The notes beneath the pieces were generated by a model that was given only the letters and a program-made list of their open reading frames with translations, was not told the origin of the DNA and did not search any database. The translations under genes and the position numbers were made by a program. Shown piece by piece: positions 1,147-56,255 of a stretch of 64,000 nt of DNA. Numbering within the stretch: the stretch's first letter is position 1; the number at the start of each line of letters is the position of its first letter. The DNA is from Chrysemys picta bellii (taxonomy: Eukaryota). Location: positions 22,072,001 to 22,136,000 of the forward strand of contig NC_088802.1 of NCBI RefSeq assembly GCF_011386835.1, written 5' to 3'.

Positions 1147-1522
1147 AGTGCTGACCCAGCCCAATGTTACTGGTAGCTTGTTACAGAGAGTGAACTTCAG
1201 GGATCTTGTCCCAAGGGGAACAAAACAGCATTTAAACCATTCTCAAGAAATCAGCTTTTAATCTTGGAGGCAGTTCAGGAAAGGCTTTTTGCTCCATTCC
1301 CACAGATAACCCTACACACCTTGATTGGTTTCACTGCTCCAGGTAAAGGGTCCAAAGATCACATCCATAAACCTATTGGATGTCTTGAGATGCTCTATTC
1401 TGGATGCAGATAGAATAGATAGTCTACCTACCTACTTATTGATTTGGCTAAGAAAACAGAGAAGATCACAGGTCAGAATGATCTCTCTATATTTATAATC
1501 CATGTTTAAAAGGCAGGTGAGT
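1147..1522 (+). promoter_or_regulatory. Putative OR promoter/non-coding first exon module, copy 1
   Basis: Non-repeat-like block homologous to 17495, 37717 and (inverted) 59500-59880; EBF-like TCCCAAGGGG at 1209-1218; donor CAG|GTGAGT at 1516/1517. Confidence 0.6.
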
Positions 1523-2101
1523 TGATTCATATTCTTATTCATTTTAATCTTTCAGTTTCAAAGAACCAGATTCTGCTCCACTTATCTAAGGGTGGGTCTC
1601 TCTGCCGAGTCCTATAGACTTCTGCCAGGATGCAACACTCTGCTCACACTGTCAGTTACAGCACAGGAGCTGTGGCTGGCAACCCAGCTACTATATGAAT
1701 CACCCAGCTTGCTCGCTCTCTCTCTCTCTCTCAACAGCACTGAGACAAATTAGATCAGCTTGTGCTTGTTAGCAGTAGTGTTTCTGTTTGGGAGTGATGA
1801 GGTTGGGGGCAGGGCATTCTCTGGAGATGGTGCTTAGCTTTGGAGTTCCCTTTGCACAGAATCTGCCTGTGACATTCTGGTTCTAGCACAAGATCTCTTT
1901 GCTTGGGCATTTGTCTGATGAGCTTATAATGGGGAAAAGATTTAGTTTCTCTCTGGCAGACATTAGGGTTTAAACATCAATTTGGCATTGGACAGAACAC
2001 TGGCTTCATTCCCATTTCCACTGAAAATCAATGTCAAAATAGCCATTCACTTCCAAGAGGGCAGGACAGATTGTCTTATGTATGAGCAGCCTGATATTCA
2101 G

Positions 2102-5100
2102 AGTCAAAAAGAAGAAGCTGCTGTCTAAAATGGATCCCCATGTGTCTCCTATAAATACTGACTGACTGGATTCTGTAGGTTTGGGTAGTCAGGAGTCTTG
2201 TTAAACCCTTGACAGAATTCCTGTATTTCAGGTGCTCAAATTCATTCATTTTCTTTGGTCTTTCCTTCACCTTTTCGCAGTGCCTAAGAGCGCTGTCTGC
2301 TGGAAGTCACTGACCATGATGTCTTGCAGTCCTAGCATGTTTTACCCCAAACCAGGACCGGCTCCAGGCACCAGCTGAGCAAGCTGGTGCTTGGGGTGGC
2401 AGCTTGTAAGAGGCGGCATTCCGCCCAAACCTAGGGCAGCATGGCTGCTTTTGTTGTTGTTGTTGTTCCGCTCCAGCCGCCCTGTAGGGGACAGCGACAT
2501 GGAGGACGGGAGTGCCCTGCAGCAAGCCCGGCAGGGCAGCCTGCGTCCTTCTCTCCCAGCCAATCGGAGCGGTGCGGAGCCCTCCCGGCATGGGGCACAA
2601 TAGGATGGGCCGCGTGGTAGCGCCCTGCTGAAGCCCTGGCCACCCCCTTCTCTCTCTCCCCCCACTACCTCATTCTCCCTCTCCCGCAGCTAGCCGGGGC
2701 ACATCTGCAGGGCAGAGAGTCCTTCAAGGCAGCATTCTTCATACTTCACCATCCTCTCTCCTTGTTTTTTTGATTGTCTGTTGGCACAGAAACATCAATT
2801 AACATGGGCTTGTTTGCTGTCTTTTTCTACAACTATGTCTGGCCTGTTTGACTGCACCATTTGGTCTGTGAAAATGGCCAGATTCCATAAATCTTACCAT
2901 CTTCATTCTCTAGAGCGCTTTCAGCTTTGTGTTATTAATAGCACAGTTTGTGGCAAGTATGGATTTGTATGGAGGCTCCAGTGCAGACACTTGGCAAATT
3001 CAGAGTGTCTGTTCATATATTCTCTCCCAGATAGACTCTAGCAGTTGCTCAATGCATGCTCCACCATCTCTTCCTTTTTAGAACACATTCTGCGGCTTGG
3101 GGAGCAATTGTCAGTGAATTTTACTTCTTACATAATTAAACCCCGTAAGGATTTTTCTTATCCGCTCACTATGAAGCTCTGCCTCTTTTTTTTTTCCAGG
3201 GATCCTTCTACAAGTCATGAGTTTGTCAATCTTCTATCACCAATAGGTTTGATCTCTCTCCACCACTATCCGTGCATTAATCTCTGTGTAAACCTTTCAA
3301 ATCTTTTTTGGCAGGTTGCTTTCTCCTTTCTTTCATGCTTTCTTGGGCTTGGATGCAGCTCAGTCTTGCTTGTTATCGTGACCGGATGATCTTTATTCTG
3401 GTTAACTCCTCATATATTTTGACATTATAGTGCTCATTATCAATTGCTTCCTCCACAGATAGCAGAGGTTTTCCTTTATCACATCATGGGATGTACATCC
3501 TGTCCATGACTTGATTGCTATCTAATACTCTATGCGTCACCGGCAGCTGTCGTCTTTGGATGTCATTTTTTTCTTCTCCTCTCAATTCCACTTGATCACT
3601 CCAGCAATATTCTGTACTACTGGCATCCCCCCCACATATTAATGGCTCAGAGCACATTCTTAGACTTCAGTTTTGTCCATAGAGTAGTTCTTGTACATCT
3701 GTAATATTCTTTCCTCACTTTTTCTTTCAATTTCTTATTTTGTAGCTCTGACAGTTCCCTGATTCCAAGATATTTGTAGGGGTCGTGCTGAGATATCATG
3801 GATAGTTCCATCATTAACTTGTATGTCATCAGATTGTACCAATCTGGCCATTTTTACAGATGCTGACACACAGTTAGCCAAGCCAACGCGTAGCTTTATA
3901 TCTTCACCAAACTTTTCCACACATCATCAATCTCTGTAGCTCTTTTTTGTGACTGTTCATGTAGTTTCAGATTGCTCATGTCTAACAAATTGTTAACTGG
4001 TTGTTGGTCTTTGATGATATGGTAAATTGTGATTATCTCAACAAGCATCCATGTCAGTGGCAGCATGGTTACCACAAACAGCACTGGTGCTAAGGAATCC
4101 CCTTGAAAGATTTGTCTTTTTAATTTGAATCTCATCAATTAGTCCCTCCCTGGGAGAGTCGAGTGCTCCAGTTAAACATAGATTGCTACAGAAAGGGAAT
4201 GATCCTTGGATAAACCTTGGACATTTTCAGTGTCTCAGTGATCCTTCATTTTGAGACACTGTTGGATGCTCTCTGGTGGAAAAAAAGTTAGCCATTGTGT
4301 GGGTAGACTTTCTTTGTTTTCAATCTTCTGTGATCCTCCTGTTTAGCCAGAAGTGGCCTTTTGTTCCTTTCATGTTTACTGTGCTGCCTTTTTGCTCAGG
4401 AACCAGCATTCCATTGTGAGCTAGCACTATCCAGATCGTCTTTCCTGGAATTATTGTAGAAGTTTCCTTATAGTTGGTAAACATGTGGTCAGTCTATAAT
4501 TCATAGGATCACTACAACTTTCTTTCTCTTTCTTTCTTTCATTGTCCCTGTCACCATCCATTTTTGAAATCCATTCGTCAAACATTTATTAATTTGTTCA
4601 AATAAACAATCATGGAGTGTTGTAAGGCATTTCAGCCAGAATCCAGGTATCCCATTTGGTCCGGGTGATTTCCAATTTTTCATTTATCTCAGTACCTCAT
4701 TTCTTTCTTTGGTGTTTCTGTGTATTCCTCTGTGCTGTGTTTTGTAAACTTTTTCTTTCATTTCTAATCCGGTTTGCTCTCTGCTTATGTTGTACAGTCT
4801 CAGACCAGATTTCCTTCCAGAAGCAGTGAAACTCTTCATCGTCATTTATTGGCTCTCTGATTTTGACTATTCTGTTTTTTATTTTTATTTTTTTCCATCA
4901 ATCAGATGAAAGACTCTCCTAGGGTCTCTGGTGAAGTGACTGTTCTCTCCATACTAATACCTTTGTGCTGAGATCTTTCAAGTCCATGACACTAAGCGAT
5001 CAGTTTCTCTTTACATTGTTCCTTCATAACTCTCACATCCTTTCATTCAGCTGATATTTCATCTCCAAGGATGCTGCTCTTTTCTCTTCAAATGATTTTT

Positions 5101-5880
5101 CCCATATTCATACAGTAGGCTGGTATCTCAATAAAAAAGCGTATTTTTCTGTTTTAACCTTCATTTCCATGGAGGTTCTTGAAGATAGGAAGTTTTCCAA
5201 TGGTTCATATATTCAGATGGATTGATGTTAAACCAATGATCTGCTACTGTTACTGTAGCATAAATTATATAATTGTAATGGCTAATCCTTGTAGGTTTTT
5301 TCTCCAGTTTCCTTGAGCACGTCATTAAGTACTTGCATTATATCATCCAGTGTGTGATGGTCTACAAATTTCAGTTGGTAGTGCTGGTGTTCAATGTCTT
5401 TTACACTTTGCATGATCTCGATCAACAAATTCTTCAGATTTTCTCTACTTTCTTCAGGTGCTCTTTCACTCATATTTGTCCTCCAATTTTCTTCCATTTC
5501 TGCCTTCTGTTTATCCTATGTCACTGCTCCCACCAAAATGTTTGTACATAGTTCTACATGAATAATCGCCTTTTCAGGCTTTCAATCTTCATTTGTGTAA
5601 ATTCTCCTCTTTGGAATAAAGCTCTCAGTTGTGCAGTGAGTCTATACTCGGTCATTTCTTTCTCAGTGTTGTCGTTTCTCTCCTTCCAGTGTTGGAGCAT
5701 TTTCTTAGCTCCAGGCTCTCTCTTCTGGTTTTGCCAAAAGACAACCTCAGATCACTTCTTGGTTTATAAGACGACTCCTTTTCACTTTATTGTCACAAAT
5801 GATCTCTGGCTGTTTGGACAGTTGCACGATACATGAGGTTGCCCACCTCCACACAAAACACTCCGCTGGGGAGGAGGCTG
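2102..5880 (-). mobile_element. Decayed R4/Dong-clade non-LTR retrotransposon (RT plus restriction-like endonuclease), antisense in predicted intron 1
   Basis: Minus-strand ORF pieces NWKSPGPNGIPGFWLK, IFQGDSLAPVLF, YKYLGI, KEYYR; many stops and frameshifts; homologous to 18551-20347 and 38813-42380. Confidence 0.75.
2353..2715 (+). mobile_element. GC-rich non-autonomous hAT-like element, one TIR only
   Basis: Starts caggaccggctccaggcacc, same family as 10091-10314; absent from the paralogous R4 copy at ~39150. Confidence 0.65.
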
Positions 5881-6521
5881 TCATCTAGATATTGTAATTG
5901 GGATCAATCCAATAAGATTCTACAGATATTACAATCTGTCATTTTTGTAGAGTATTTATAGAATTGGCCAGATCCCAAGATGGTGTGCATCAGCCATAGC
6001 TCCATAGGCACCAATGGGCCAAATCTCCAGCTGCTGTAAATCAGCCATAGCTCTATTTAAGTTAATGGGACAGATGAAAGAGATATTAGGCTAGAGAGAG
6101 ACAGCAAGTGGACTATATCCTGTTGGTTAGGGCATTCACCTCCAGATGTAGGAAACCTAGTATCCAGTCCCTCTATTCCAAAGCTTTTTTATTATTTAAC
6201 TACAGTAGAACAGCTTCAACAGGAGAGAATGAGGGAGCCCTATGTCCAACTGTCCCAATATCACAGCTGAGCGGTATTTCTTTGAGTACCAGTAGGGCCT
6301 TATCCTGGGATTTAGGGAACTAAAGGAGTAGTTTGGTGCCAAAGTCCTTTTCTGCATCTAGCCCATTTTTGCCTATTTTAAACACACATTTTATAGGATG
6401 TAGAAGGCCTCTTTACATTCATCCTACTGATCAGATGATCTCCACATGCCATTTCAATTTACTCGTGTGTTAATTGTATTTTTTTCCAGTCTGACAGGTC
6501 AGTTTTCCTGAGTAAGAATCC

Positions 6522-7454
6522 ATGGGAAATCAAACCGAAGTGACTGAATTTATTATCCTGGGACTTTCCAATGACCCACAGCTGCAGATTTTTCTCTTCC
6601 TGGTTTTTTTACTTGTCTACCTAATCACGCTTTTGTCAAACATGGTGATCATGGTGGTGATAAGGGCTGATCCTCACCTTCACACCCCAATGTACTTCTT
6701 CCTGTCTCATTTATCCTTTGTTGATATCTGCTATGCCTCAACCGTAGAGCCTAAGATGTTGGTGCATTTCCTAGCAGAGCACAAAACCATTTCTGTCAAT
6801 AGCTGTATTGCACAGATGTTTTTCATTTTGCAGCTGGCTACTACTGAAATTTTTATTCTCTCAGCGATGGCTTATGACCGCTACACTGCCATCTGTGACC
6901 CATTGCGTTACATGGAGAGAATGAGCAAAGAGATCTGTGTTCAGCTGGTGAGTGGTGCATGGGCAATAGGCTTCTTCCATGCCCTGCTTAACACAGTTTT
7001 TGCCCTAAAGTTGCATTTCTGTGGACCCAGTCAAATCAACCATTTCAGCTGTGAGCTTCCTCCCCTGTTACAACTGTCCTGCACTGAGAGTCTCACCAAT
7101 CAAGTGGTGCTTCTTACTTCTGCTGTGATATTTGCATCAAGCTCCTTCCTCCTTACCCTGATCTCCTATATTCACATCATCTCCACTGTCCTGAGGATAC
7201 ACTCTGCAGAGGGCAGGCGTAAAGTCTTCTCCACCTGCAGCTCCCACCTGATTGTGGTTGGCTTATTCTACCTGACCGGTTTTCTCCAGTACACAAAACC
7301 CAGCTCGGTCTCCTCTGTTGTTCTGGATGAAATGTTCTCCATCCAGTATAGCATCTTGACTCCCATGTTAAACCCCATCATCTACAGCCTGAAAAACAAA
7401 GAGGTGAAAACAGCTGTAGGGAAAATGTTTCAGAAATTCAAATTTCTCAAGTAG
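6522..7454 (+). CDS. Class II olfactory receptor, 310 aa, intact (OR5-like subfamily, paralog A)
   Basis: NQT glycosylation site, LHTPMYFFL, MAYDRY, KVFSTCSSHL, PMLNPIIYSL; candidate acceptor gacag|g at 6497/6498. Confidence 0.95.
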   Translation: MGNQTEVTEFIILGLSNDPQLQIFLFLVFLLVYLITLLSNMVIMVVIRADPHLHTPMYFFLSHLSFVDICYASTVEPKMLVHFLAEHKTISVNSCIAQMFFILQLATTEIFILSAMAYDRYTAICDPLRYMERMSKEICVQLVSGAWAIGFFHALLNTVFALKLHFCGPSQINHFSCELPPLLQLSCTESLTNQVVLLTSAVIFASSSFLLTLISYIHIISTVLRIHSAEGRRKVFSTCSSHLIVVGLFYLTGFLQYTKPSSVSSVVLDEMFSIQYSILTPMLNPIIYSLKNKEVKTAVGKMFQKFKFLK

Positions 7455-9769
7455 TGTCGATCTTTTAAAAAAAATCAAGGGGAAAAGAACTGTGGATAAC
7501 GTGTGTTTGGGAGATTCTCAGCTCACGTATCTGATGCTTTGGGCCAAAGCCTCAGCTGCTCTTAATCAGTGTGGTTCCATTGAACTCAGCAGGCCACATC
7601 CCGATTGGGTAGAAGAGACACTGGAGCAAGGGGGACGGGATCCTGGGTCTCCATGTAGGTTGCATGCTAGAAGCACCAGAATCTAGAGCCATACATGCAT
7701 GCTTTCTCTTTCTTTCTTTCTTTCTTTCTTTCTTGAATGCAGCTATAGCCAATTTGTACCACTTGAGGACATGACCAGTTCTATGAAAAGAACAGCTGTC
7801 TATAGCATTCTGTAGTTCTTCTAGAGTATTTTGTTGAAAACCCTATTTAATATCTGTAATATCTTATAGGATTCATCCTTATTAATGTCTCTGTCTGCAA
7901 TAATAACAATAATTAATAATCAGTGTGATCGCCAGCTGGGTCAAGATGCACAAAGAAAGTAAAACTCTATTAGGCGAGCTTGAGAAGGACACATATCAGG
8001 TATCCCATATCACAGTGGTTAGGGCACCCACATGGGAGGAAGCAGATCCCTTTTTAAAATCTTTCTCCTTATTAGGCACTTGAGGAGGGTCTCCAACCTC
8101 CCTAAGTGCTAGGATACAATTTGAGGGGTTTCCTCCACCTAATTGCTTCTTCTTCTCTCCCCTCTCTTGCTATGGTTTCTTGCCACCTTAGGTGGGGTTA
8201 GAGGCTTCCAAGATGAGAATTCCAAGGTGAAGGAGGTGTCTTCTCCCAGAGGAGATAGGGACTGAACTCCTGTGATATCTGCAGTATTTAGAACACAACC
8301 CCCTGCTTGGCCTTTCCCATTGCCTAAAAACCATCTGTCATGTTGGCTTTTTTTTAATCCCATTCTTAGGTGTCTGTGTCTCCACTTTTACTGTGTAGGG
8401 AGCCTGGCTGCCCATCTCAGGCTCTGGGAACCAAATGATTACAAAAAAACCCTAAAAATTATCCACTGCAATGCTCAGCATTAAAACAGCTACATCCCTT
8501 TGTGAATCTAACTCTGGATGTAAATTGACATAGGGCCATTACATCAATGGAATTAGGTGGATTTACATGAACTGGGAATCTGGCCCATAGTGTCCATATT
8601 CTAAATTGATTTTACATTCCTCAAATTTCCCTCACTGTTGAGTTGGAAAGACCCATGTATCATCGAGTTTCCACTTAAATCCTAAACATAATAGGAAGTG
8701 GTGCTGGCACTATGCACCCCAGTGAAATTCACCCTTAGATGCAGCACCACAGATGGTGGAAAGCAACATAACTCCATTGAAAGAAACAGGACTACACCAA
8801 TATATGTCCGCTGAGGACCTTGCCTCGGCGAATAAAGTTATGATTCAGAATCCACCTTTTGTCAAAGTTGGACTTACAAAGATATCGTCTCAGGTAAATG
8901 AAGAGCCAACCAGCAGGCTGGGATTTTCAAAAGAGTTTAGGCAAGTTAGGTGCCCTACTCTTATTGAATTGGAAAAATGTAGTCCCAGTGACATGCCCAA
9001 GGTCAGTCGGAAAGTCGGTGGAGAGGAAGATATTGAAGTCTCATCTCTTCCATCCCTGTTTCTGCCTTGGATCATACAATCATCCATGTGCCTGCTGGTA
9101 GTCCCATATCTCTTCCCATCTCAGCCTGGGACTAACAGAATGCACTCCCTGTCCCCATTAAGAAAGATACCACCCTCTCCTCCTGATTTCACTGGGAGAA
9201 TTTCTTCTTTCAAATTCTTCACACAAAAAAATGAATAGAGCTGGTTGAAAATGGGAATATTTTCATGAAAAAAAAAATCATGTCCCTCTTTCTCATCAAA
9301 ATTCATGACTTTTGTAACCAACTCATTGAATAGAAAATAGCATGATTTAGCTACTCTCACCGCCTGCTTTTGCAGGGTGTCACTCTGTTGGACTGTAAAT
9401 TCTTTAGAACAGGAGTGATGACCACTTCTGTGTGTGTTAGTTCTGGTCAAAAGTTTTTTCCATGTTTGGAAAATAAAATTTGAAAGTGTTGTTTCATCTA
9501 GATAGAAATTTTCTATGGAAAAAACTAAATTTTGACGAAAAATATATTTTTTTTTCCTTGGGGCGAGGGGAGGATTCAATTTCAATTTGATGTCTCTAAA
9601 TGAAATGAAATTTTGTTTCAAAATGTCCAATTGAAATGAAAATTGTCATTTTGAATAGACATTTTCACTTAAATTAATTTACCATGAGCATGAAAGGAGT
9701 CATTTTAATGTCAAAGTATTCATTCAACATGAAAGTTTTCATTAGAAATTTTTTTTTCTCTTAATTAAT

Positions 9770-9950
9770 TGGCCTCTCAGAGTTGGTAGAACAACTCCCA
9801 CCTGTTTATGCTCTCTGTATGTGTGTATATATATCTCCTCAATATATGTTCCATTCTATATGCATCCGAAGAAGTGGGCTGTAGTCCACGAAAGCTTATG
9901 CTCTAATAAATTTGTTAGTCTCTAAGGTGCCACAAGTACTCCTGTTCTTC
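9770..9950 (+). mobile_element. Penelope-like element terminal fragment
   Basis: cacgaaagcttatgctc...gttagtctctaaggtgccacaag shared with 29666-29844 and 49890-50023; Penelope assignment from family recognition. Confidence 0.6.
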
Positions 9951-10090
9951 TTTCATTTTAAATGGACACTTCAAGAGGAAATATTTTGTTCCAATCAAAT
10001 TTAAAGATGAAATGTTTAGACATCTAAACCTTTTAGAATTTTTCATCTCATAACATATTGACATTTCCTCTTTTTGGACCCTGTTGGGAA

Positions 10091-10314
10091 CAGGTCCGGC
10101 TCTGGCTTTTTTGCCGCCCTAGGTAAAAAAGCCTCCCGCCACCCCTGGCCCCCCGGCGGGGAGCGCGGCCGGGGAGGGCGCCGAGCCCGGCCGTGGCCCC
10201 GCTCTCCCCGACCGGCCGAAGCACCAGGGGGAGGGTGGCGAGCCCGGCCGCGGCCCCGCTCCAGGTGCCGCCCCAAGCATGGGCTTGGTCAACTGGTGCC
10301 TGGAGCTGGCCCTG
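10091..10314. mobile_element. hAT-like MITE, 224 bp
   Basis: Imperfect TIRs caggtccggctc / gagctggccctg; 8-bp TSD gttgggaa (10083-10090) / gttgggag (10315-10322). Confidence 0.8.
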
Positions 10315-10417
10315 GTTGGGAGTAAACAAAATGTCAAAATATGGAGCTTCCTGGGTGATGGAAATTTCTGTATCATCTCTAATATTAGTACACTGCCAAG
10401 TATAACAAGGAACTAAT

Positions 10418-10485
10418 TTCATAGATTCAAAGGCCAGAAGGGACCCCTGTGATCCCTAGTCTGTCCTCCTGTATCACACAGGCCA
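10418..10485 (-). mobile_element. Short CR1 3'-end fragment
   Basis: ttcatagattcaaaggccagaagggacc tail motif. Confidence 0.55.
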
Positions 10486-10689
10486 AATGTATTTATTTAT
10501 ATATATAAAATAAAGAAGTGGTTTCTCCAGTGTCTCAGTCTATTATATTTAAGCTCTCTGGGTCATAGACTCTCTTTAATTTCATCTTAAGCACAGAGAC
10601 TAGTATTTTGTTGGTGCCTAATGGACAATTGATGGTAATAACCTTCTGTAATTTGGGGAAAACAACCTCACAGATGGAGTGCAGAGTTT

Positions 10690-12540: not shown

Positions 12541-12729
12541 GCTTTAATACATGTTGTAATAATTTGGCCTACAAACTTACCCTCATTATGAGCTCAACTG
12601 TGAAAAATATGTAACAGTTCATCAGAAGTCACAGTAGCCTCTAATAGCAAATTTCCTGGGACCGCAGAACTTCTTCATCCTAATCCTGAAAGTCATCCTG
12701 ACCAGACTGGTCTAGAGCGAGGGAGGAAG

Positions 12730-18015: not shown

Positions 18016-18056
<41 letters not shown>

Positions 18057-42380: not shown

Positions 42381-42446
42381 AGAAATCCTAGATATTGTAA
42401 TAGAGATGAATCCAATAATATGCCATGGATATTAAATACTCTAAAA

Positions 42447-45139: not shown

Positions 45140-45420
45140 GATGTTAGAACATAAGAACAAATGATAGACTATCCTAGGTCAGATGGTCCATCAGACCAAT
45201 GGTCTATCTTGCACAGTATCCTGTTTCTGACAGGGGCCAGTGCCAGATTCTTCAGAGGGAAAAATTAACAGAACAGGCAATTATTGAGTGATCCATCCCC
45301 TGTTGTCCGGTCTCACCTTCTGGCATTCAAAGGTTTAGCGACATCCAGAGCAGGGGGTTGCCTCTCTGGCCATCTGGACTAATTGCCATTGATAGACCTA
45401 TCCTTCATGAATTTATCTAT
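45140..45420 (-). mobile_element. CR1 3' UTR fragment
   Basis: Paralog of 23100-23380. Confidence 0.7.
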
Positions 45421-45567
45421 TTAAAAAAAAAAACAACTGTTTTCAGCACAAGAGAAAGGGAACAAGGGAAGTTAAAATGAAAGCCTGATTTAATATTTTA
45501 TATTTCAAATGCTTTAACTGTTTTGCTGCCTTGTCTATATGTTTAATAAAAGGTTTTAAAAAAACGT

Positions 45568-46547: not shown

Positions 46548-46749
46548 GTCTCCCTGCAGACAGATTTACACTCATGCTAATAGTCCAGACTCACACTTAA
46601 TTTCAATAAAATTATTCATGTGTACAACATTCACAGTAATAAAAGCTTTTGTTGGATTGGGCATTATATACCTATTTATATGAGTATTTGTATTTTCACT
46701 AAACCTACCACCCTGAAAAGTGAGATCTGCAAGATGTTAATTAGGCCTT

Positions 46750-47170
46750 AACTTTCATAGGGGTCCAAATTCTGGGCACTGAGGAAGAGACAGGAGCAGA
46801 TCTTGAATACAATGGAAATGAAAATGTGAAGATGGGTGCTTGGAGTTACATGGAAGAACCATGTTTGGAATGAATGAAATAGGGGAAATATGAAGATGAT
46901 ACAAGTTATAGAAAAGCTGAGGGAGTCCGGGAATAGATGGTTTGGCCATGTGAAAAGAAAATCGGAAGAATATATATGAAACAGGGAGTTAAGCTTAGAA
47001 ATGGAGGGTAAGGGAAGGGTTGGCAGACCCAGAACTAGATGGATGGATGTCATACTAGAGGATATGATTAGCTGCAGAGTTTCCAAGGAATAGCATTCAA
47101 GACAGACTGGAATGGATAAGAAGGACGCGAACAGTCAACCCTATATAGATGGGAGTAAGGCTGGAAGAAG
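46750..47170 (+). mobile_element. RTE-clade LINE 3' fragment
   Basis: Paralog of 13790-14250 with shared flanks. Confidence 0.7.
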
Positions 47171-48668
47171 ATGGGAGTTGAGTAAGCGCAGCAAGAGGTT
47201 CGGACACTATATTGCAAGAGTGGCCTTGTGACAGATATGACAAGGTCCTGTAACATCCTGGATAAACCTGATTGAATTAAGTTTCATATCTTTGGAGTTC
47301 ATTGTATTAAAAATGCAAATGTTTGTGTACTATTGTAGGATTGTGTGGAGCTTCTCATAAGGAAGGCAATTGCTGGGAGATATTGGGGACTTCAATGTAC
47401 TTTTTGGGATAATACATGTGAAATGGATTTTCAAGGAAATTAGTGGGGGTGAAGATTATGCAAATGACCCACCTAGAATCCAACCTTTTGAAGCTACACT
47501 TTGAGCAGATTCCCATTGTCTGGCTGATTACCTAGTCAAGATCTCTTTAAAGAGCCAAACTGGAGAAATCAATGACTCAGAATCAGGAGATGATCTTGGT
47601 CTGAGCTGAGATGTGATGAACTTGAAACCAGAGGAAGATCCTTTGCTACTTGTTGGACAGCTCCTACCAGAGCCCTGCACACATATTTAATCTCATACTT
47701 CACTAGAAGCTAAATTAGTTTGGCTTTGCTCTTAAATTACAGGGAGAAAATCTGTCTGATTTGCATTCCCTTGGCCTGCTCAGATTCTCCAGTGTGTCTG
47801 TGTATGGTTCCCCTAGTATGACCCAGCCTGTTCAAACAGGTTCCAGTGCTCCCCAAGTACAGAAGGCTACAGACTTTAACACACTGACTCTTAATGTCCA
47901 TTAAGGCTGTGTCTACACTATAAGCTAGAGGTGTGATTCCCAGTTCCCCAGTTCCTGGAGCTAGCATTCCAAAATTAACAGTAGTATCATGGGCAGCAGT
48001 GAGTGGAGGCACAGACTAGTTTCACTGAATGAAAACCTGCCTGAGAACCCTATGCGTAGGTATTTGGCATGCCTAGCCCATGCCAACATATGCCAGGTCC
48101 TGTACTACAGCAGCTACATTACACTTCGTGTGTGTCTACACAGTCAGCTAGGGGTGTGATTCCCAGCTCACGCAGACATACTCATGGTAAGTCTCATTGA
48201 GGTAGCTCACTCAAAATAGTAAAATGTTAGGCAAGTATTGGAAAGAGCCTCTTTCCCTACAGCCAAGACAGACCCCTTTTGGGTGAAATATCCTTTCCAT
48301 TATATGGTACTAAAAGCATCACAGTAGTGACGGATCCTGAAGCTATCTTAACAATTACTAGAGGGAAACCCCATCTGTCACACTAGAAATATAGCTAGAG
48401 AGAGAGAATGTTACTGAAAAATTACTAGAGTGCCCAAAGGATGGTACCATTGTGTTTATAGAATTTACACCTGGGTTTGACTTACAAATCAATGTACCAT
48501 GGTACTGTTCCTCTATGTGGCACACTGGTGAAGCCATATCCACAGCACTGATTGATGCAGTGTGGAACGGTTGTATTGCAGACTGGCATTCTGTAGAATC
48601 AGGGGTGCATCAGTTATGCTTTCAGGTATGCTTTAGAGTATTTAATGTTATAATAGAGTATTGGATGA

Positions 48669-49774
48669 TGTGACGGGGTGCAACCTGAGACTGTGGGACT
48701 TCTGTGCCCCCTGAATTCACCAGCCTGGGGTGTGTCTCAAAATGCTCTGCTACTGACAAGCAGCAAACCACTCTCCAGGTGCTGTTATCATTCAGTCCAG
48801 CAGCATGTGAAGTCCCATACCCAGCTTGATTGCATGAATGCTCTCAGAGCCACTCATGAAATCTCAGAGAGAAAGGCACCAACCAGATCCTCCCAGCCTT
48901 GTACCTCAGGGATATACTGTCTTGCACTGCTCAATAGAAAATTGAAAGCCAACCAAACCAGATGGGATGCACTGCTCAAGATCATGTCATGAACAATGCA
49001 AATGTATTAATTGATTTGCCACTTCTTTAAGGGGAGTAGACATGCACAGCCTTTGCAACCTGAGTAGATTTACCAAACACTTCAGACAAACTCACTAGTA
49101 AGAATAAACATAAAAATAAGTTTACTGATGGCAAAAGATAGATTTTAAGTGATTACAAGTAGTAAGCGTATAGATCAAAGTTAGTTTAAGAAATACAATA
49201 AAATCGCAGTCTGGGTTCTAGTAACTGAATAATATATGAATCAAGCAATGTCTCACCCTGATAGATGATACAAATAGTTCCTTAGTATGCAGGCTAGAAA
49301 TCTTTTCAGCCTGGGACCCCCTCCCCAGTTCAGAGTCTTTGTTTTCCAGATGTTCCTTCAAGCGTTGAGTTGTGGGGGAAGAAAGAACAAGTCATGATGT
49401 CACTTTCCTTCTTTTATAGCTTCCTCCAGTGGCTGGAGTTTTACAGTTTCAAACACAGGCCCCAGCCGAGTTTGTGGAAAAATACAGTTTACAAGATGGA
49501 GTCAGGGTCACATGAGCAAGTCACATGCCCTTGCATACTTTGATGACTCCACAATAGCAGCCATCACCCATTCTTCAGCTAGAAAGTTTACAGGAAGGCC
49601 CCTCAGGCGGGGACAGGTTTCTTCTATGGTCTATTGAGAGAGTTAAGTGTTCACTAATGGGCTATTAACTTGAATAGTCCGTTCACAATGTGTTGGCCAG
49701 ACAAGATTTAAATACCTGGTGGGTGTCACCCCAGTAGCAAACATCTGAAATACTGGTACCTACTTAATATTCAT
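48669..49774. mobile_element. LTR-like element, truncated
   Basis: Starts TGTGACGGGG; paralog of 26627-27659. Confidence 0.65.
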
Positions 49775-49889
49775 GTCAGGGACTCGAACCCAGACGGCAT
49801 GGTTCGTTGTCTGACCGCAGAGAGACAGGCAACACCAGCAAGGTCCAAACACAAGCTCTTCATTGAGTAGTGCACACAACAATAGAGAG

Positions 49890-50023
49890 TATCAGAGGAG
49901 TAGCCATGTTAGTCTGAATCTGTAAAAAAGCAACAGAGGGTCCTGTGGCACCTTTGAGACTAACAGAAGTATTGGGAGCATAAGCTTTCGTGGGTAAGAA
50001 CCTCACTTCTACAGATGCAAGAG
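49890..50023. mobile_element. Penelope-like fragment, 134 bp
   Basis: 12-bp TSD aacaatagagag (49878-49889, 50024-50035); sits inside an LTR-like stretch starting tgtcaggg near 49774. Confidence 0.75.
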
Positions 50024-50407
50024 AACAATAGAGAGCGGCCCGTCTCCAGAGAGAACCAGCCCTGATTACAATAACTAGTGAGATTATATAGACAGTTCCA
50101 TCGCGTCATAGTTAAAACAACCCAATCCACCCCCCTTTATTAGTTAAAAGCTTCTAATATTCATGCATATCTATCTTCTTTGACACTACAAACAATTTGT
50201 GATGCCTCAGCAACTTCTTATCAGCTTTGTTGTCATGCACCAGAGACTAGGAGAAAGGAGGGAGTTGAGTACAGATGAAGAACAGAAACAGTCCAAAAAA
50301 ACCGTTCCTAGTACATCTGGTACAAGAATGCGCGCCCCCCCCCCCAATCTCATTCTTTGAAGCCCAAGCATGCATGTCCTTATGTTTCACAGAGAGACAG
50401 GAATGGT

Positions 50408-53400
50408 CCCCTTCACAGATTCGAAATATTTAATGTACTTAGCTGGCCACCATTGATGAGTATGGAAAAAATTCCTAGGGCAGGTAGATAGATAAATAGT
50501 TTTTTGTATGATACATATACATACATGTTGGTTTGTCAATGCTCACAAGAGACTACTCTAATACAGAAATTTGCACTGTGCAGAATCACAGTATTTCTGC
50601 TGCCTGGCAAACAAATGTGTCTGCAAGATTACTCTGTGTTTTTTTTTCTAGTGTGCAAAGGGAAGGAAATAAGAAGGGAAATTTATGCCCCGCTGAGAGC
50701 AAGAGATATTGGGCCATGTTGCAATCTTATTTACACCACTGGTAAACATGGAGTAACTTTACCGAAGCTGATGATGTTACTCCAGATTCGCACAAGGTTA
50801 ACTGGAGGTTAGAATCTGGTCTGTTATTCCTAATGGTGAGTTTTTATTGCCTGTTAATTTCCAAATCAGTTTTCTAGTGTTGTTTGACATAACACTTCAC
50901 AACCCTGCTTCCTTCTGTACACTGAATATTAAATAAAAGAGCCATTATGTCTCAGCATTTTCACTTTCTAGCCTCAGTGCCAGAATAGCCTGAATATGTT
51001 CCACTGTAATCTGATTGTTCATTGTAAGTGAGAGCACAAAATGGTGAACACAACTGATACAAACTTCATACTAAGGTCAAACAAGGCTAACATCTATAGA
51101 GATGGCTGAATAATTTAGAGCAAGTGATGCATACAGTAATTTTTTCCAGTTTTTTCCATGCAGAACCACACAATGTTCTCAAATGCACTCATTCAAAATT
51201 ACTCTAAAAATGTAATAAAAAACCCAGGTTGATTGTGAGCCACCTGTGGTCAAATATTTATTGAAATTCTTTTTCATTGTGGGGACTTTTGTCTAAAGTG
51301 CTTCAGTGGCTGAGGAGCCTAATCTTGGAATAATGAGATCCAAGGGCAAGAAGCTCAAATTCAAATTAAAAATGTGGCACATCTTTTTAACAGTGATGGT
51401 GATTAACTATCAGAACCAACTCAGACTAGGTGCATTCCTGGAGTATAGGATTTAGTCAAACGTTATTAGACTAAGTCCAGGGGCAACTGGGTGAAATTTA
51501 ATGGCCTTGGTTATACAGGAGGTCAGAATAGATGATCAAATGATTCTTTCTGGGCTTAAAAATCGATGAATCTAGGTGCCATAGAAAATTAATGGGAGTT
51601 AAACTTCCAAGTCATTTGGGCACTTTTGACGTATCTCTGTCTCTATTCTAATCTATCTAAGCCTGTGTCACTGGCCACATGGCAGAGAGAAGAGAAAAGC
51701 GTCTTACCCCTGCAGCTACCTCTAGGCAAATGCCAGCAAATCCAGGGTCAGCCAGCCTGGGGAAAACTATGCCTCATGGTTGAGCCAATCAGGAGCTGTT
51801 CTGTAGCAACACCATAGAATATATTTCCCTGAACCAATCACAACGTCCCAAGGGGCGTGGCTTTTGACCGGTGGTTTGTTTAAAAAAAATACAGCTCTTT
51901 AAACAAAGGAATGAAAAGACAAACACTGTACATAACACAAGTTGTTGTAGTAATATACCAGCCTTTAGCTTGCTTTTTAATTCTTTGCCGAAAGAAAAAC
52001 TGCTGTAAAAAAAGCTTTAAATTTACAGACTTTATAAAGCACACACACAGGCTAACTTAACTGTTTTACATTATGCTAGTTTTTCTTTTAACACTTTATA
52101 CCAGAGATTAGAAGGCTTTCCCCCCACCCCTGACTCTTTTTCTTCTTAATGTTTTTTTTTAATCAAAACACAGTTAAACCAAGTAAAGTTTTAACAAACT
52201 TTTAAAACACCAATCAAAAGAAACATATCTGTAGATTTCTTTATTTACCGGTTATCTTTTTCAGTGAAAGATTTTTTAATCACAGGATTACAATTAAATA
52301 AAGTGATTAGAAGCTACACCATCACAAATTTTACAAATAATTTAATCATGTTTTTACATTTTAAAAAGATGCAGTTTAAATTGTATTACAGAGATGATAG
52401 TTATTTAGTTATGGAAGTTGAATAAAGAAAGATTTTAGTAATTTTTTTGTTGAAATGCCTTGCATAGTATGAAAACCCACCTGCACAAATAGCTTACAGG
52501 AATGTAAATTGTGAAGACATAAGTTCCAGGAGAATAGCAATATTATACAAAACCCACATGTAAAGAAGGGCTGTACAATAATAAAATAAAACAGAAAAAG
52601 ACATGTTATAGCTTTCTAAATGTTTAATGGCACTCTTTCAAAAATAGTATTAGCTTGCTTTTTAGAGTTTTGCCTAAACAAATTGACCAGAATACAAAAG
52701 AAAACCCAATGAAAACTGCTCTGCCTTAAATTGTTAAGAAATCCAGGGTGCAGTTAAAAAAAACAAAACACATAATTGATTGGTTTTATAATGGTTTATA
52801 TATATATAAAAAACAAAAGCCACAGCTCGAGTTAAACTCAAGTTGCTCCTCGAGCTAACGTTGCAGATAGGGGTATGTCTGCACCGCAATCACTTGATGT
52901 TACTGCAGCTCATGTAGACACACCCAAGTCAGCTTTAAACTAGCTAGCTCAGGTACCGGAGCAATGGACCTGCAGCAGCCTGTGCTTCAGCCTGGGCTGT
53001 AGCAGCCCACCCGGAACCCTGTGAATTTACTTACATGGCTAATCTCAGCTGAAGCGTGCGCTGCCGCAGCTTTAACGCTCCAGTACTTGGTAGCTAGAGT
53101 AAAGCTTGCTGGGGACTGTCTACACCAGCTGAAATCACACCCCATGATTGCAGGGTAAACTGACCCAAAGACAAGCCCATAAATTCAACCCCAAATGTGC
53201 AAACAGGTGTGAAAAATGATGAGAATGGCTTAAAAATCATGAGATATTAATCTACACATTTACTGGCATTTTTTTCTCAGGGCCTCTTTCACCTCTTTGT
53301 TTCTCAGGCTGTATATGAAGGGATTGGCCATAGGAGTCAGAATTGTGTAGAAGACAGAGAACACTTTGTTGAGGTCTCTGAGTGTGTTGGTGTTTGGTAG

Positions 53401-56255
53401 CAAATACACAATGATCAGGGTCCCATAGAAAATTGTCACTACAATGAGGTGAGAGGAGCAGGTAGAAAATGCTTTTTGCCTCCCGGTGGTGGACCGGATT
53501 CGCAGGATAGTGGAGATGATACACAGGTAGGATGTCCCAGTTAAAGCAAACGGGGGCAGGGTGAATAAAGCAGCCACAATGATGATTACAAGCTCCACCT
53601 GGTAGATGTCGTTGCGGTAGAGATTTATTATTTGTGTAAATTCACAGAAGAAATGATCAATTTCATTGGGGCCGCAGAAAGGTAATTGTAACATCATACC
53701 CGTTACTACGGAACTAGCCAGTAACCCACTTATCCAAGACCCAGCTGCTAGCTGGAGGCAGAAACTGCCATTCATAAGGGTTGCATAATGCAGTGGTTTG
53801 CATATCGCTAGGTACCGATCATAAGACATTGCTGCCAGGAGATAACACTCGGTGGCTGCAAAGAAGCCAAAAAAGTAACATTGTGTGATGCAGCCACCAA
53901 TAGAAATAGTTTTGTCCCCAGTCAGGAAACTGGCCAGCATCCTGGGCAGGATAGTGGAGGTGTAGCAGGTTTCCAGCCATGACAAGTTCCCCAGAAAGAA
54001 GTACATGGGGGTGTGAAGGTGCTGATCAGCCACAACTAGCACAACAGTGAGGATGTTCCCGGCCATGGTCACCATGTAAATCACAAAGAACAACATAAAG
54101 AGAAGAATCTGCAGTTTGGGAATAGTCCCAAAACCCAGGAGGATGAACTCTGTGAGGGAGGTTTGATTTCCCTGTTCTGTGTCTGCCATGGACCAAACTA
54201 TACAAGAGAACAAGAATGGCATTAGTTAAATGTCAAGATCACATTATCAATTTAAATGCATTAATGTTCAAATGCTCCCTCTCCTTCAGGTCCCCCAAAC
54301 AAATACTGGGCTGAGCACACAGTCTGGGGGCTTGGAGTCATATAATGGAGGCTTATGACATCTGAGAGTGAATGAGAAAAACTGACACACAAACATGCTG
54401 CTAAGGCAAGCTCAGATTTGTGTAAAAACCCTATTTTTTCTGATTGGCAAAAGAATAAGCCTTGCTCCCTTTGTTCTGCTCCAAGAGCTGACACTAGTGG
54501 TATGCAGTGGGAAAACCAGATCACCAGGAGGAGTCTGGCAAATGAAGGACTCCCTGAATTCTCACAGCCTCGTTTGGGCTGGTAAAACACCCTACAATTT
54601 TGCTGGCTGTGAATCGGCTTGGTTTGTCCCTGACAGAAACCAACTCACCATGCGTGAGGTTGTGCCACTCCAAACCATCACCTCCTAAGCCTTTTTAGGT
54701 GGTCATCATTTGATTTCATTGTGCTGTACCATGTAGATAAGTTTTTATGCTGCTTTGTGATCATTGCATATTAACTTTTGAATTCCTCTGTTCAATTTTC
54801 AGAATGTCCCTAAGCAGTTTGAATCAACATATCCCTTGGCAATCGTCTCAGTATATATTACATAAGCTCTGAATACAGAGTTGAGGCAGTGACCTCAGGA
54901 TTAGGGTCTAGAGTGTGAGGGATTTAGAGACCTGAAGTTGGGGATTTGGGTGAGGGCATCTCAAAGAGTTTTCCTCTGCCTAGAGCACCACATAGGGGAT
55001 TCTGTGGGCCTGATTTTGGTGGAAATCAGGCTACTGGAAGCATCTCACCTGCCCATCATCATTGCAGTCATCAGCCATAGAGTCATTTATAGAGGAAATT
55101 CCTAGTCTCTTTATGTGGACAAGCACTCACTGAGGATAATTAAAAGCTACTACTGGAGATAATCTGGATAAGAGATAATACTGCAATATATAAACTGGGA
55201 TTCTATTTGAAGCCCACACCTTGGCTAGAGCATTCAGTTGGATGCCGATTGCAAAACTAAATGTCACTGAAAATGCCACATCCCAGTAGAAAGTTTTGAT
55301 TTTGATGAATCAACATTTCCATCAGAAAATTTTCAAATACATCAAAATTATAAAATAAATTAAAAAGAAACAAAACACTATACAATTATGAAAGAAATAG
55401 AAATAAAATATAAAAAAGTAAAATTAAAATAAACACTATAAAGTAAAAATAAAACTATAGAACATAAAATTAAAATATAAAATGCAATAAAATAAAAAAT
55501 ATATATAAACAAATATTTTCAAAAATGGAAAATTTTAACAAAATAAAATTAAAAAATAACATTTGAAAGTAAATAAAATAGAAAGAGTAAAAAAATAAAA
55601 AGTTATAAGTGCAGTGAAATATGCTGGGAGAGAGTCGAAGATCAGTTAATCCCTGATTATGTGAGCAAGAACGACCTTGGCAAACATCTGAACGAGAGAA
55701 TGCTTGGTGCCACCTCAGAGGCCTGGCCAACCCCATCCAAGATCCCATCTCCAGCTGTGGCCATCCCTGATGCTTCAGAGGAAGGAGACCTAAAACCACC
55801 CCTAAAACAAAAACCCTCCGAGAATACATTCCCAGAGGGGGATCCCCTTCCTGACCTGAAACCCTGAAGCATGAGCTTTAGGAAGCTAAGACATAAACCA
55901 GAAGTGAGGCCCAGGGCTGCTAAGCCGTGCCCTCCAACATCTCAAGAAATGCAATCGTACAGTTGCACTCATAAATTTGTCCAGCTCTCTCTTAAAACTA
56001 ATTAAGTTGTGTGTCCCTACAGCTCCTGTTGGAAGGTTGTTCCAGAATCTCACGCCTCTGTTGGTGAGAAACCTTCTTCTAATTTCCAGCCTGAATTTGT
56101 TCATGGCCAGTTATATACACATTTGTTTTTGTCCTACAAGGATAGGGAATTAGGAAGAGGAGCTCCACCATAACTTTTATCCCAGTAGTTATGGTGCTCA
56201 TCTCGGATATGGGAGACCCCTACTTCAAGTGTCTGATGAGGAGAAATGACTGAAA
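50408..56255 (-). repeat. Inverted segmental duplication, arm 2 (block X')
   Basis: Reverse complement of 28279-35300, lacking the CR1 and Penelope-like insertions of arm 1. Confidence 0.9.
53260..54189 (-). CDS. Class II olfactory receptor, 309 aa, intact (paralog F, inverted copy of C)
   Basis: 20 aa differences from C by manual count; candidate acceptor TAG at 54198-54200 (minus). Confidence 0.93.
   Translation of the reverse strand: MADTEQGNQTSLTEFILLGFGTIPKLQILLFMLFFVIYMVTMAGNILTVVLVVADQHLHTPMYFFLGNLSWLETCYTSTILPRMLASFLTGDKTISIGGCITQCYFFGFFAATECYLLAAMSYDRYLAICKPLHYATLMNGSFCLQLAAGSWISGLLASSVVTGMMLQLPFCGPNEIDHFFCEFTQIINLYRNDIYQVELVIIIVAALFTLPPFALTGTSYLCIISTILRIRSTTGRQKAFSTCSSHLIVVTIFYGTLIIVYLLPNTNTLRDLNKVFSVFYTILTPMANPFIYSLRNKEVKEALRKKCQ

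Follow-up and report, generated by a model that had tools for sequence, protein, structure and literature searches.

A 64-kb stretch of an OR cluster of Chrysemys picta (GCA_011386835.2, CM062329.1), analyzed over its whole length and called the window here, was described in a first-pass annotation as carrying 12 micro-inversions between paralogous copies, read as products of an unusually active template-switch regime, of this cluster or of the turtle lineage, that was proposed to remodel OR promoters and flanks. Are these inversions real, where and on which branches did they arise, and what kind of process made them? We found about 31 micro-inversions of 12–159 bp (median about 46 bp) in an OR sub-cluster, real and inherited, and the hotspot that they form is limited to one OR locus and one lineage rather than being turtle-wide; where the events occurred is the new result.

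Identification of micro-inversions

We compared the window with itself (Self-BLAST, E < 1e-10, both strands) and with orthologous sequences of five other turtles (Trachemys, Malaclemys, Gopherus, Mauremys, and Emys; six assemblies), accepting events with self-complementarity below 0.6 and discarding palindromes and (AT)n tracts. Window positions 11223–32155 match sequence L001 at 100%, and Emys sequence L008 is probably the orthologue of the A-block. All 12 of the previously noticed inversions are present, nine with strong support and three short or weaker, and self-alignment on both strands returned six of them as opposite-strand matches inside colinear paralogue chains. They and their partner segments are as follows.

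1836–1866: ancestral orientation of the 38401 segment, copy c1; matched by the orthologues of c1 in Mauremys and of c3 in Gopherus and Mauremys
4023–4034 / 40519–40530: old 12-bp inversion, c1/c3; exact in-place 12-mer
4310–4336 / 40744–40770: old 27-bp inverted match, c1/c3; partial duplication in c3
14891–14925: 35-bp inversion, Chrysemys-side derived; inverted 97% versus Mauremys, 94% versus Emys
17593–17651: 52–59-bp inversion, derived in copy c2; four-copy alignment
17717–17759: segment of about 42 bp differing in orientation between c2 and c1/c3, old; four-copy alignment
22700–22766: 41-bp segment inverted and moved over its 25-bp neighbour, derived in copy A
44743–44784: counterpart of the 22725 event in copy B, with the ancestral arrangement
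25002–25160 / 46063–46221: 159-bp A/B inversion with small junction indels, not polarised; 147/159 inverted versus 55/81 colinear
26436–26514: ancestral orientation of the 79-bp segment, copy A; Gopherus B-orthologue colinear with A
48484–48562: 79-bp inversion, derived in emydid copy B; inverted 96% versus Gopherus; also in Trachemys and Malaclemys
29227–29313 / 55249–55336: 87-bp inversion between inverted paralogues, not polarised; ends TTG...CAA; 82/87 inverted versus 31/48 colinear; flanks 13/15 and 14/15 colinear
29861–29912 / 54791–54841: 52-bp inversion adjoining a palindromic repeat insertion; 49/51 inverted versus 19/33 colinear
34463–34529 / 51205–51272: 67-bp inversion, not polarised; 66/67 inverted versus 49/59 colinear; flanks 15/15 and 14/15 colinear
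38401–38431: in-place inversion of 31 bp in copy c3, emydid-derived; inverted 30/31 versus c1 1836–1866 and 100% versus Gopherus and Mauremys

The 79-bp pair (26436–26514 / 48484–48562) matches at 74/79 positions inverted versus 51/73 colinear. The event placed at 22731 (22725 in our alignment) is an inversion combined with a transposition: the order S–X, ancestral and kept in copies B, D, and c1 and in Gopherus, Mauremys, and Emys, is X–S(rc) in copy A, and 22725–22766 matches 44743–44784 at 40/42 positions inverted versus 6/10 colinear. Each copy's state of the 12-bp event at 40519–40530 is kept in orthologues of the same copy; at 40744–40770, the c3 state occurs in Gopherus, Mauremys, and Malaclemys, and the c1 state in Mauremys. 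The 14891 event gives a weak match to its own paralogue (a 15-mer, 47516–47530), which carries the outgroup state. At 17593, the c2 orthologues of Mauremys and Emys run colinear with c1, c3, and c4, and at 17717 the c2 state is common to both species. The B state of the 25002 event is found in Trachemys, Malaclemys, Gopherus, and Mauremys, and for the 34463 event Trachemys has both states and Mauremys has the A state.

Comparison with the orthologues revealed about 20 in-place inversions beyond these 12.

9670–9714: 45-bp inversion versus the Mauremys orthologue, not polarised; score 30, 88.9% inverted, in place
15091–15121: 31-bp inversion versus Emys L008; score 22, 90% inverted, offset 0
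17079–17163: 85-bp inversion separating Chrysemys, Trachemys, and Malaclemys from Mauremys (inverted 92%) and Emys (96%)
17263–17339: 77-bp inversion, Chrysemys-side derived; inverted versus Mauremys, Emys, and paralogue 59991–60055
18986–19020: 35-bp inversion, Malaclemys only (one assembly); 100% inverted, flanks perfectly colinear
35951–36025: 75-bp inversion in single-copy sequence, separating emydids from Gopherus and Mauremys; inverted 96% and 94%
36211–36241: 31-bp inversion, emydids versus Gopherus and Mauremys; 100% inverted, ends TTA...TAA
36990–37011: 22-bp inversion, emydids versus Gopherus and Mauremys; inverted 100% (Mauremys) and 95% (Gopherus)
37352–37386: 35-bp inversion with ends TTAG...CTAA, setting Chrysemys and Malaclemys apart from Trachemys, Gopherus, and Mauremys
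38149–38179: 31-bp inversion, Trachemys only (one assembly)
40172–40235: 64-bp inversion, Malaclemys only (one assembly); 100% inverted, flanks 15/15 colinear, ends AGA...TCT
48119–48222: 104-bp inversion, emydids versus Mauremys (and Gopherus); 88.5% inverted, flanks 15/15 and 14/15 colinear, ends TTAC...GTAA
56691–56768: 78-bp inversion, derived in emydid copy c5; Mauremys c5 colinear with c1 and c3
57551–57585: 35-bp inversion versus the paralogous Malaclemys A-extension, not polarised; 97% inverted
59582–59628: 47-bp inversion, derived in emydid copy c4, in the same paralogous segment as 17717; inverted 93.6% versus Gopherus, 91.5% versus the Malaclemys A-extension
59668–59732: old 65-bp inversion that distinguishes the B-type c4 copy from the A-extension and from c1/c3; state common to Gopherus and Mauremys
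61300–61330: 31-bp inversion, emydid-derived; other state in Gopherus, Mauremys, and the Malaclemys A-extension
61611–61642: 32-bp inversion of an imperfect palindrome, emydid-derived
61784–61824: 41-bp inversion, emydid-derived; ends TG...CA

Trachemys and Malaclemys align colinearly, at 98.9%, to the A-block around 17079, and the un-flipped state at 18986–19020 is shared by Chrysemys and Trachemys. The alignment of a related-species contig ends at 40174, within the 40172–40235 event. Many of the inversions do lie between paralogous copies, as first described, but several fall in the single-copy interval 35951–37011 and many distinguish orthologues; thus, paralogy is not needed for inversion.

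Three of the four fold-backs proposed earlier are real templated inverted duplications, whereas the fourth, at 59669, is the old 65-bp inversion listed above.

29699–29852: spacerless palindrome of 154 bp, copy A only, in which a SINE-like repeat abuts its reverse complement; arms 95% complementary
31952–31989: 38-bp palindrome in copy A, made by a 23-bp templated inverted insertion that copy B lacks and Trachemys conserves
33211–33244: palindrome of 34 bp at a CR1 insertion's 5' junction, where 15 bp of the target flank are repeated in inverted orientation

Several observations bear on the reality of the inversions. Inverted identity was 82–100%, with much lower colinear identity, and the inverted matches lay no more than a few bp from the mapped centre. 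In a chance control, sequence that was reversed but not complemented gave 0 in-place matches with a score of at least 20, compared to 10 for the reverse complement. At clean events, 13–15 of 15 flanking bases were identical on either side; other events had junction indels of 1–16 bp. Both states of the paralogue events recurred in independent Trachemys and Malaclemys assemblies, and states were common to three deirochelyine assemblies, except for three Malaclemys- or Trachemys-specific events seen in one assembly each. Short-read contigs from an independent Chrysemys sample crossed 35900–37154 and 38364–38949 with 0 differences. An assembly artefact would leave a state in a single assembly and in no independent reads; the states here had multi-assembly and contig support.

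Restriction to one locus and one lineage

At the OR locus under study, alignment of Chrysemys to Gopherus revealed 11 inversions in 17.7 kb (1,740 mismatches, 119 indels), and alignment to Mauremys revealed nine in 18.4 kb (1,618 mismatches, 131 indels), whereas Gopherus and Mauremys differed by 0 inversions in 19.1 kb (1,487 mismatches, 100 indels). All eight events that could be scored in these three genera were on the Chrysemys side (chance P about 4e-4), and all 11–12 events polarised by paralogues or second outgroups were emydid-derived. Expressed per substitution, about 18 events accompany roughly 1,900 emydid-side substitutions, whereas the Gopherus–Mauremys pair has 0 per 1,487 (P about 3e-5).

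As a control, we used one paralogous OR locus on the same chromosome, 1.85 Mb away, in one species pair (Chrysemys–Emys). This pair showed six inversions in 9.5 kb (about 585 substitutions) at the locus under study and 0 in 13.8 kb (554 mismatches) at the control locus (Poisson P(0) = 0.003; conditional P = 0.018). Between the same species, indels numbered 6.5 per kb at the hotspot locus versus 2.8 at the control, and divergence was about 6.2% versus 4.0%; the raw divergence of Emys L008 was 6.9–9.9%. The rate at the hotspot locus therefore exceeds that of comparable sequence in both comparisons, each of which is significant. Chrysemys and Malaclemys differed by 0 inversions in window positions 1–17515. 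Within the locus, spatial clustering of events was weak (P = 0.017 by one statistic and 0.35 by another).

The density claimed in the first-pass annotation thus holds, being far above published backgrounds and both internal controls. An unusually active regime is borne out for this OR locus in the emydid, probably deirochelyine, lineage, but its extension to turtles as a whole fails on the zero counts between Gopherus and Mauremys at the locus and between Chrysemys and Emys at the paralogous one; these two zeros make the hotspot local. A patchy genome-wide excess in emydids may exist, and is conceivable because the control comprises one locus and one pair.

Timing and recurrence

The events fall into time layers: old ones conserved in each copy's orthologues, stem events, and four crown events in separate species. 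Homoplastic or overlapping flips were also found. The same paralogous segment flipped independently at 17717 and 59582, and the 31-bp event at 38401 and the 78-bp event at 56691 overlap at paralogous sites. A third case is 37352, whose distribution is discordant with the species tree and reflects either recurrence or incomplete lineage sorting. The Emydidae–Testuguria split dates to about 70–95 Ma. With divergence times of this order, we roughly estimate an emydid stem rate of 6–9 inversions per Mb per Myr, on the order of 5x that of published bird hotspots.

Comparison with known systems

In about 1 Gb of human–chimpanzee alignment, 59 definite microinversions of 17–33 nt were found, all flanked by inverted repeats, and template switching or microhomology-mediated break-induced replication was proposed as their cause (Potapova, Kondrashov and Mirkin 2022; PMC8755829). 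The turtle events resemble these in being in-place, mostly exact reverse-complement replacements flanked by short inverted repeats, perfect or nearly so. They differ in numbering about 31 of 12–159 bp in 64 kb, in having inverted repeats of 0–7 nt, and in their restriction to a single locus in a single lineage. Great apes yielded 4,017 template-switch events, of which 5.5% were length-neutral, with a median copied length of 12 nt (PMC7954356). There too, a nearby reverse-complement copy explains clusters of substitutions and hairpin fold-backs occur alongside (Loytynoja and Goldman 2017, PMC5453318; Walker et al. 2021, PMC7954356), whereas the turtle events are mostly length-neutral with a median of about 46 bp and, by a rough conversion, are one to two orders of magnitude denser per substitution. 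Birds accumulate 0.25–0.39 microinversions of 5–38 bp per Mb per Myr, rising to 1.6 in hotspots (Braun et al. 2011; PMC3123225). Like the avian CLTC and CLTCL1 intron hotspots, the turtle locus has a locus-specific excess, homoplastic or overlapping flips, and no obvious stem-loop motif; unlike them, it covers tens of kb of an OR cluster and is a hotspot in one lineage that is absent in sister families, rather than being spread over the whole tree (PMC3123225). In an experimental yeast system, break-induced replication between diverged repeats is reported to produce kb-scale template switches (Anand et al. 2014; PMC4215184). Error-prone repair synthesis yielding complex rearrangements, as described there, would fit the duplications, orientation changes, fold-backs, and raised point-mutation density that occur together at the turtle locus, but the turtle events are germline changes known from sequence, and the link is by analogy.

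Mechanism and alternative explanations

Inverted microhomology at inversion ends is a known signature of template switching and MMBIR. Microhomology of at least 2 nt was present in 15/25 events (chance about 17%) and of at least 3 nt in 10–11/25 (chance about 6%), upholding the earlier observation that most ends carry it. Most clean ends had 2–7 nt, and clean events were length-neutral; the longest case is 35951–36025, flanked by CTTGAGA / TCTCAAG. The inversions have the features of sequence expected of the template-switch/MMBIR micro-inversion class: they are in place, have colinear flanks and microhomology, and are not palindromes or strand-symmetric simple repeats. The remaining 10/25 events had 0–1 nt, and several events had junction indels; thus, a simple two-switch model does not fit every event.

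Microhomology, length neutrality, and nearby templated fold-backs lead us to infer a replicative mechanism. Each inversion would most likely reflect two short-range template switches, made while the DNA is replicated or undergoes break-induced repair. The nascent strand would leave its template, pair with the opposite strand through inverted microhomology of 2–7 nt, copy a short stretch backwards, and return to the first template. We consider it likely that these are inversions fixed one by one over tens of Myr, as probable template-switch pairs, at a local hotspot of the emydid lineage. The locus also contains segmental duplications, a 12.7-kb orientation change, and one deletion; with the palindromes, fold-backs, and raised substitutions and indels, these are consistent with error-prone, switch-prone repair synthesis.

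A local, heritable (cis) cause may have arisen on the emydid, probably deirochelyine, stem, would predispose this OR sub-cluster of roughly 60 kb to breakage or stalled forks, and would still be active in Chrysemys, Trachemys, and Malaclemys. We put forward tentatively, at somewhat less than even odds, the fuller proposal that such a switch created a standing template-switch hotspot that remains active, independently, in no fewer than three living genera and re-flips the same paralogous segments, while the orthologous DNA of tortoises and geoemydids is silent. If so, the locus would be a natural system in which to map determinants of short-range template switching in the vertebrate germline. 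Gopherus and Mauremys presumably have similar repeats yet show no events, a point against a cis cause.

Alternatively, most stem inversions could have arisen at once in an emydid ancestor, with background accumulation since, if tens of kb were re-synthesised in a single catastrophic replication-repair episode or a few such episodes, for example by a chromoanasynthesis-like process or along an extended break-induced replication tract. The concentration of about 18 events on one branch and none in sister lineages, the substitution and indel densities raised relative to the control locus, and the large rearrangements in the same region would all fit. We nevertheless regard this as unlikely, given at least three time layers (pre-split, stem, and four crown events in three species), crown inversions at about 1 per 290 substitutions, still well over the Gopherus–Mauremys zero, a stem–crown difference of only about 2.8-fold per substitution, and stem events spread across about 52 kb that includes unduplicated sequence. 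Rather than lying on one branch, as a single event would require, inversions are pre-split, stem, and separately Malaclemys, Trachemys, or Chrysemys events.

Compared to gradual accumulation at a local hotspot, two further explanations are improbable. A trans-acting change in replication or repair throughout the genome of turtles or emydids, merely sampled by the window, conflicts with the 0 events between Gopherus and Mauremys at this locus, between Chrysemys and Emys in 13.8 kb of the paralogous OR locus on the same chromosome, and between Chrysemys and Malaclemys in window positions 1–17515. Equally doubtful is backward re-ligation, by end joining, of fragments released by two double-strand breaks 20–160 bp apart: the 38401, 25002, and 56691 events, with small junction indels and no microhomology, could have arisen in this way, but the youngest and cleanest events (18986, 38149, 40172, and 37352) are length-neutral to the base with 1–4 nt inverted repeats, inverted microhomology is far above chance, and templated fold-back insertions occur at the same locus.

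Artefacts of assembly or alignment, including chance reverse-complement matches, deserve practically no weight, since six assemblies from five other species and independent Chrysemys short-read contigs repeat the states, the reversed-only control was empty at the score used, and accepted events had low self-complementarity, although a few candidates were truly palindromes or (AT)n (22951–22980, 43089–43114, 31952, and 33211). Among these, 43089–43114 was dropped, and 22951–22980 and its counterpart 44994–45023 are a conserved palindrome rather than an inversion.

Verification of micro-inversions between paralogous copies

The window lies on chromosome CM062329.1 of GCA_011386835.2 (Chrysemys picta bellii), and the Chrysemys locus L001 is identical (100%) to window positions 11223-32155. 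It contains five intact OR reading frames, CR1 remnants and no Ns, and self-BLAST revealed a mosaic of old segmental duplicates.

Duplicated blocks in the window (self-BLAST)
1090-8400, direct: c1 block
17420-27700, direct: c2/A block
37660-49820, direct: c3/B block
28200-35400 vs 56330-50300, opposite: inverted duplicate pair
13.3-15.2 kb, 16.0-18.6 kb and 59.3-62.3 kb: additional duplicate pieces

The micro-inversions listed in the first-pass annotation are real: 6 of the 12 surfaced in self-BLAST as opposite-strand matches with E<1e-10, at homologous position within colinear chains. For these six events and the one at 38401, inverted identity ranged from 30/31 to 147/159, colinear identity was far lower, and the flanks abut in colinear order. 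The inversions at 17593 and 17717 were seen in an alignment of the four paralogous copies (c1-c4), and those at 14891, 40519 and 40744, which are short on paralogue evidence alone, gained support from orthologues. We detected in-place inversions by short-word BLAST with a geometric filter and, as a chance control, repeated the search against partner sequence reversed without complementation, which gave 0 in-place matches scoring at least 20 compared to 10 for the reverse complement. An ungapped search for in-place inversions at tight tolerance overlooked the events at 22725 and 25002 because global alignment is poor there. The listed inversion at 22725 also involves a transposition, as two adjacent segments, S and X, are ordered S-X in the ancestral state and X-S(rc), with S reverse-complemented, in copy A (alignment A2). 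Among the reported fold-backs, those at 29699, 31952 and 33211 are genuine templated inverted duplications, and '59669' is instead an old inversion. Candidates at 22951-22980/44994-45023 (palindrome), 43089-43114 ((AT)n) and 46252-46282 turned out to be palindromes or simple repeats and were discarded, as were the weak matches at 556-593 and 641-670.

Orthologous loci were retrieved via OR proteins from Malaclemys, Trachemys, Gopherus evgoodei, Mauremys reevesii and Emys orbicularis; the OR proteins retrieved included no Emys B-block orthologue and no Gopherus or Mauremys A-block orthologue. The A-block is colinear in Trachemys and Malaclemys at 98.9% and the B-block at 97-98%, and both states of the paralogue events therefore recur in independent assemblies. 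Short-read contigs from an independent Chrysemys sample cover 35900-37154 and 38364-38949 with zero differences, and a contig from another run covers 40439-40878. Independent assemblies and short-read contigs thus show that the micro-inversions are not artefacts.

Inversions between orthologues and their distribution

Applying the same detector to orthologous alignments revealed further inversions, with one assembly behind each of the Malaclemys-specific (18986, 40172) and Trachemys-specific (38149) events. Together with the old paralogue events, this brings the number of distinct inversions to about 31, with sizes of 12-159 bp.

Inversions in orthologous alignments
35951-36025, 36211-36241, 36990-37011, 38401-38431, 48119-48222, 48486-48561, 56691-56768, 59582-59628, 61300-61330, 61611-61642, 61784-61824: emydids vs Gopherus and/or Mauremys
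9670-9714, 14891-14925, 15091-15121, 17079-17163, 17263-17339, 17593-17651, 22725: Chrysemys vs Mauremys and/or Emys
18986-19020, 40172-40235: Malaclemys only, both with 100% inverted identity
38149-38179: Trachemys only
37352-37386: Chrysemys and Malaclemys vs the rest

Chrysemys differed from Gopherus by 11 inversions in 17.7 kb aligned (1,740 mismatches, 119 indels) and from Mauremys by 9 in 18.4 kb (1,618 mismatches, 131 indels), whereas Gopherus and Mauremys differed by 0 inversions in 19.1 kb of the same DNA (1,487 mismatches, 100 indels), even with relaxed thresholds. Eight events could be scored in Chrysemys, Gopherus and Mauremys alike, and every one maps to the Chrysemys-side branch (P about 4e-4). 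All 11-12 events that could be polarised, by paralogues (c1, copy A, c4 and the A-block continuation in Malaclemys, L002:16496-20933) or by a second outgroup, fell on the emydid side. Six sites within 9.5 kb show the ancestral state in Emys L008, probably the orthologue of the A-block. At a control locus, a paralogous OR locus 1.85 Mb off, Chrysemys (L011) and Emys (L012) differed by 0 inversions in 13.8 kb (554 mismatches, 39 indels; Poisson P(0) = 0.003, conditional P = 0.018), and Chrysemys and Malaclemys differed by none across window 1-17515. These three zeros tie the excess to a hotspot locus in emydids. The first-pass annotation had proposed an active regime in 'this cluster, or the turtle lineage'; a hotspot locus in emydids stands, but a turtle-wide regime is contradicted by the Gopherus-Mauremys zero. 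Judged from a single control locus and a single pair of control species, the excess is neither turtle-wide nor OR-cluster-wide.

Rates and time layers

There were about 100-130 point differences per inversion on the emydid side and about 290 in the crown, compared to below 1 inversion per 490 point differences (95% limit) in Testuguria, the Gopherus and Mauremys side; relative to indels, inversions numbered about 1 per 10-30. Emydidae and Testuguria diverged about 70-95 Ma, which translates into roughly 6-9 inversions per Mb per Myr on the stem. Of all mismatches in colinear alignments, 6-20% fall inside inverted intervals, which therefore inflate divergence estimates and mimic local rate acceleration. 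Published figures include a bird microinversion rate of 0.25-0.39 per Mb per Myr, with hotspots at 1.6 (PMC3123225), 59 definite human-chimpanzee microinversions (PMC8755829), and 4,017 template-switch events in great apes, 5.5% of which were length-neutral (PMC7954356); their per-substitution conversions are rough inferences. We found no report in the literature on micro-inversion rates in turtles.

The events fall into three time layers: old events (4023/40519, 4310/40744, 17717 and 59668), whose states are conserved among orthologues of each copy; about 18 stem events with a median size of 46 bp; and four crown events in separate genera. The same paralogous segment flipped independently in two cases (17717 and 59582; 38401 and 56691), and the species tree is at odds with the distribution of 37352. 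The stem events may represent a burst; a single catastrophic event cannot account for these layers, for crown events in separate genera, for the repeated flips and for the 37352 discordance. Micro-inversions are generally regarded as rare, nearly homoplasy-free characters, a view that the hotspot locus breaks with about 1 inversion per 100-300 point differences and repeats at the same sites. Zero events in sister-family orthologues and at the nearby paralogous locus provide an unusually clean contrast for template-switch proneness. The inversions may also have altered OR regulation, as in the promoter remodelling that the first-pass annotation proposed.

Breakpoints and mechanism

Clean events involve no length change and end in short inverted repeats (TTG/CAA, TTA/TAA, TTAG/CTAA, TTAC/GTAA, AGA/TCT, TG/CA, CTTGAGA/TCTCAAG). 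Inverted microhomology, noted earlier at most ends, was confirmed at 2 nt or more in 15 of 25 events (about 17% by chance calculation) and reached at least 3 nt in 10-11 of 25 (about 6%); it was 0-1 nt in 10 of 25, and some events carry junction indels. From the sequence, we infer that this signature fits template switching or microhomology-mediated break-induced replication at short inverted repeats. Substitution and indel density at the hotspot locus exceeds that at the control locus, and large rearrangements and templated fold-backs are also present, a combination that recurrent error-prone repair synthesis would fit. Gene conversion between inverted paralogues was rejected as the source of the inversions because conversion keeps homologous register; the emydid c4 flip, which retains c4-specific sequence missing from c1 and c3, also counts against it.

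A search for a shared breakpoint motif across inversion ends found a TT...AA bias alone: inverted segments tend to start with TT and end with AA. Of ten events having at least 2 nt of microhomology, three show TTG/CAA and another three TTA(N)/(N)TAA. This bias may reflect AT-rich microhomology and was not taken for a nuclease site. No cis element emerged from the analysis. G-runs and a high-copy palindromic repeat adjoin some inversion clusters and are not taken as a cause because their absence from outgroups is not established. There is a weak indication that the events cluster spatially.

Rearrangements and repeats near the inversions

Micro-inversions can terminate gene-conversion tracts, as in Malaclemys, where L005:12304-12845 of the B copy matches copy A (24465-25006) at 96% identity, compared to 83% between A and B in Chrysemys, and looks like a conversion tract whose end coincides exactly with the border of the 159-bp inversion. 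Past 49774-49889, the sequence of Malaclemys, Gopherus and Mauremys is the reverse complement of 62552 downwards (one junction seen), so a ~12.7-kb segment (49890-62552) is oppositely oriented in Chrysemys and Trachemys; this pattern conflicts with the accepted tree, which groups Trachemys and Malaclemys. Beyond 27660, the A-block in Trachemys (L003:16497-20933) and Malaclemys (L002:16496-20933) is an 87-91% paralogue of rc(62552-57054), and the Emys continuation is similar in form; Chrysemys lacks it and has an OR 3' fragment (27660-28393) in its place. A 35-kb inversion at the 27660 jump in Trachemys and Malaclemys was rejected, the 87-91% identity marking a paralogous continuation missing there in Chrysemys.

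The stretch 57171-59626 is GC-rich (57%) in Chrysemys, with G/C runs and several long inverted repeats (119-nt arms, 58234-58726), and the orthologues in Malaclemys and Mauremys lack it. At 37476-37674 lies a repeat of very high copy number that includes a G-run; its genome-wide copies extend beyond 37674 with a palindromic partner (loose contig ends), and c1-c4 unit homology begins exactly at 37674, so a duplication boundary falls at a palindrome centre. About 1.35 kb (38414-39764) is present in Chrysemys and Malaclemys and missing from Trachemys L004. A CR1 fragment inserted in Emys (L008:5233-6142) is 96% identical to the window copy at 10687-11598, which suggests a young CR1 family recently active in emydids. 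L011 (Chrysemys CM062329.1:20220159-20241091), an 84-85% paralogue of 13519-22357, lies 1.85 Mb away, and its Emys counterpart L012 is just 117 kb from L008; the two genera therefore differ by a great expansion or rearrangement of the cluster.
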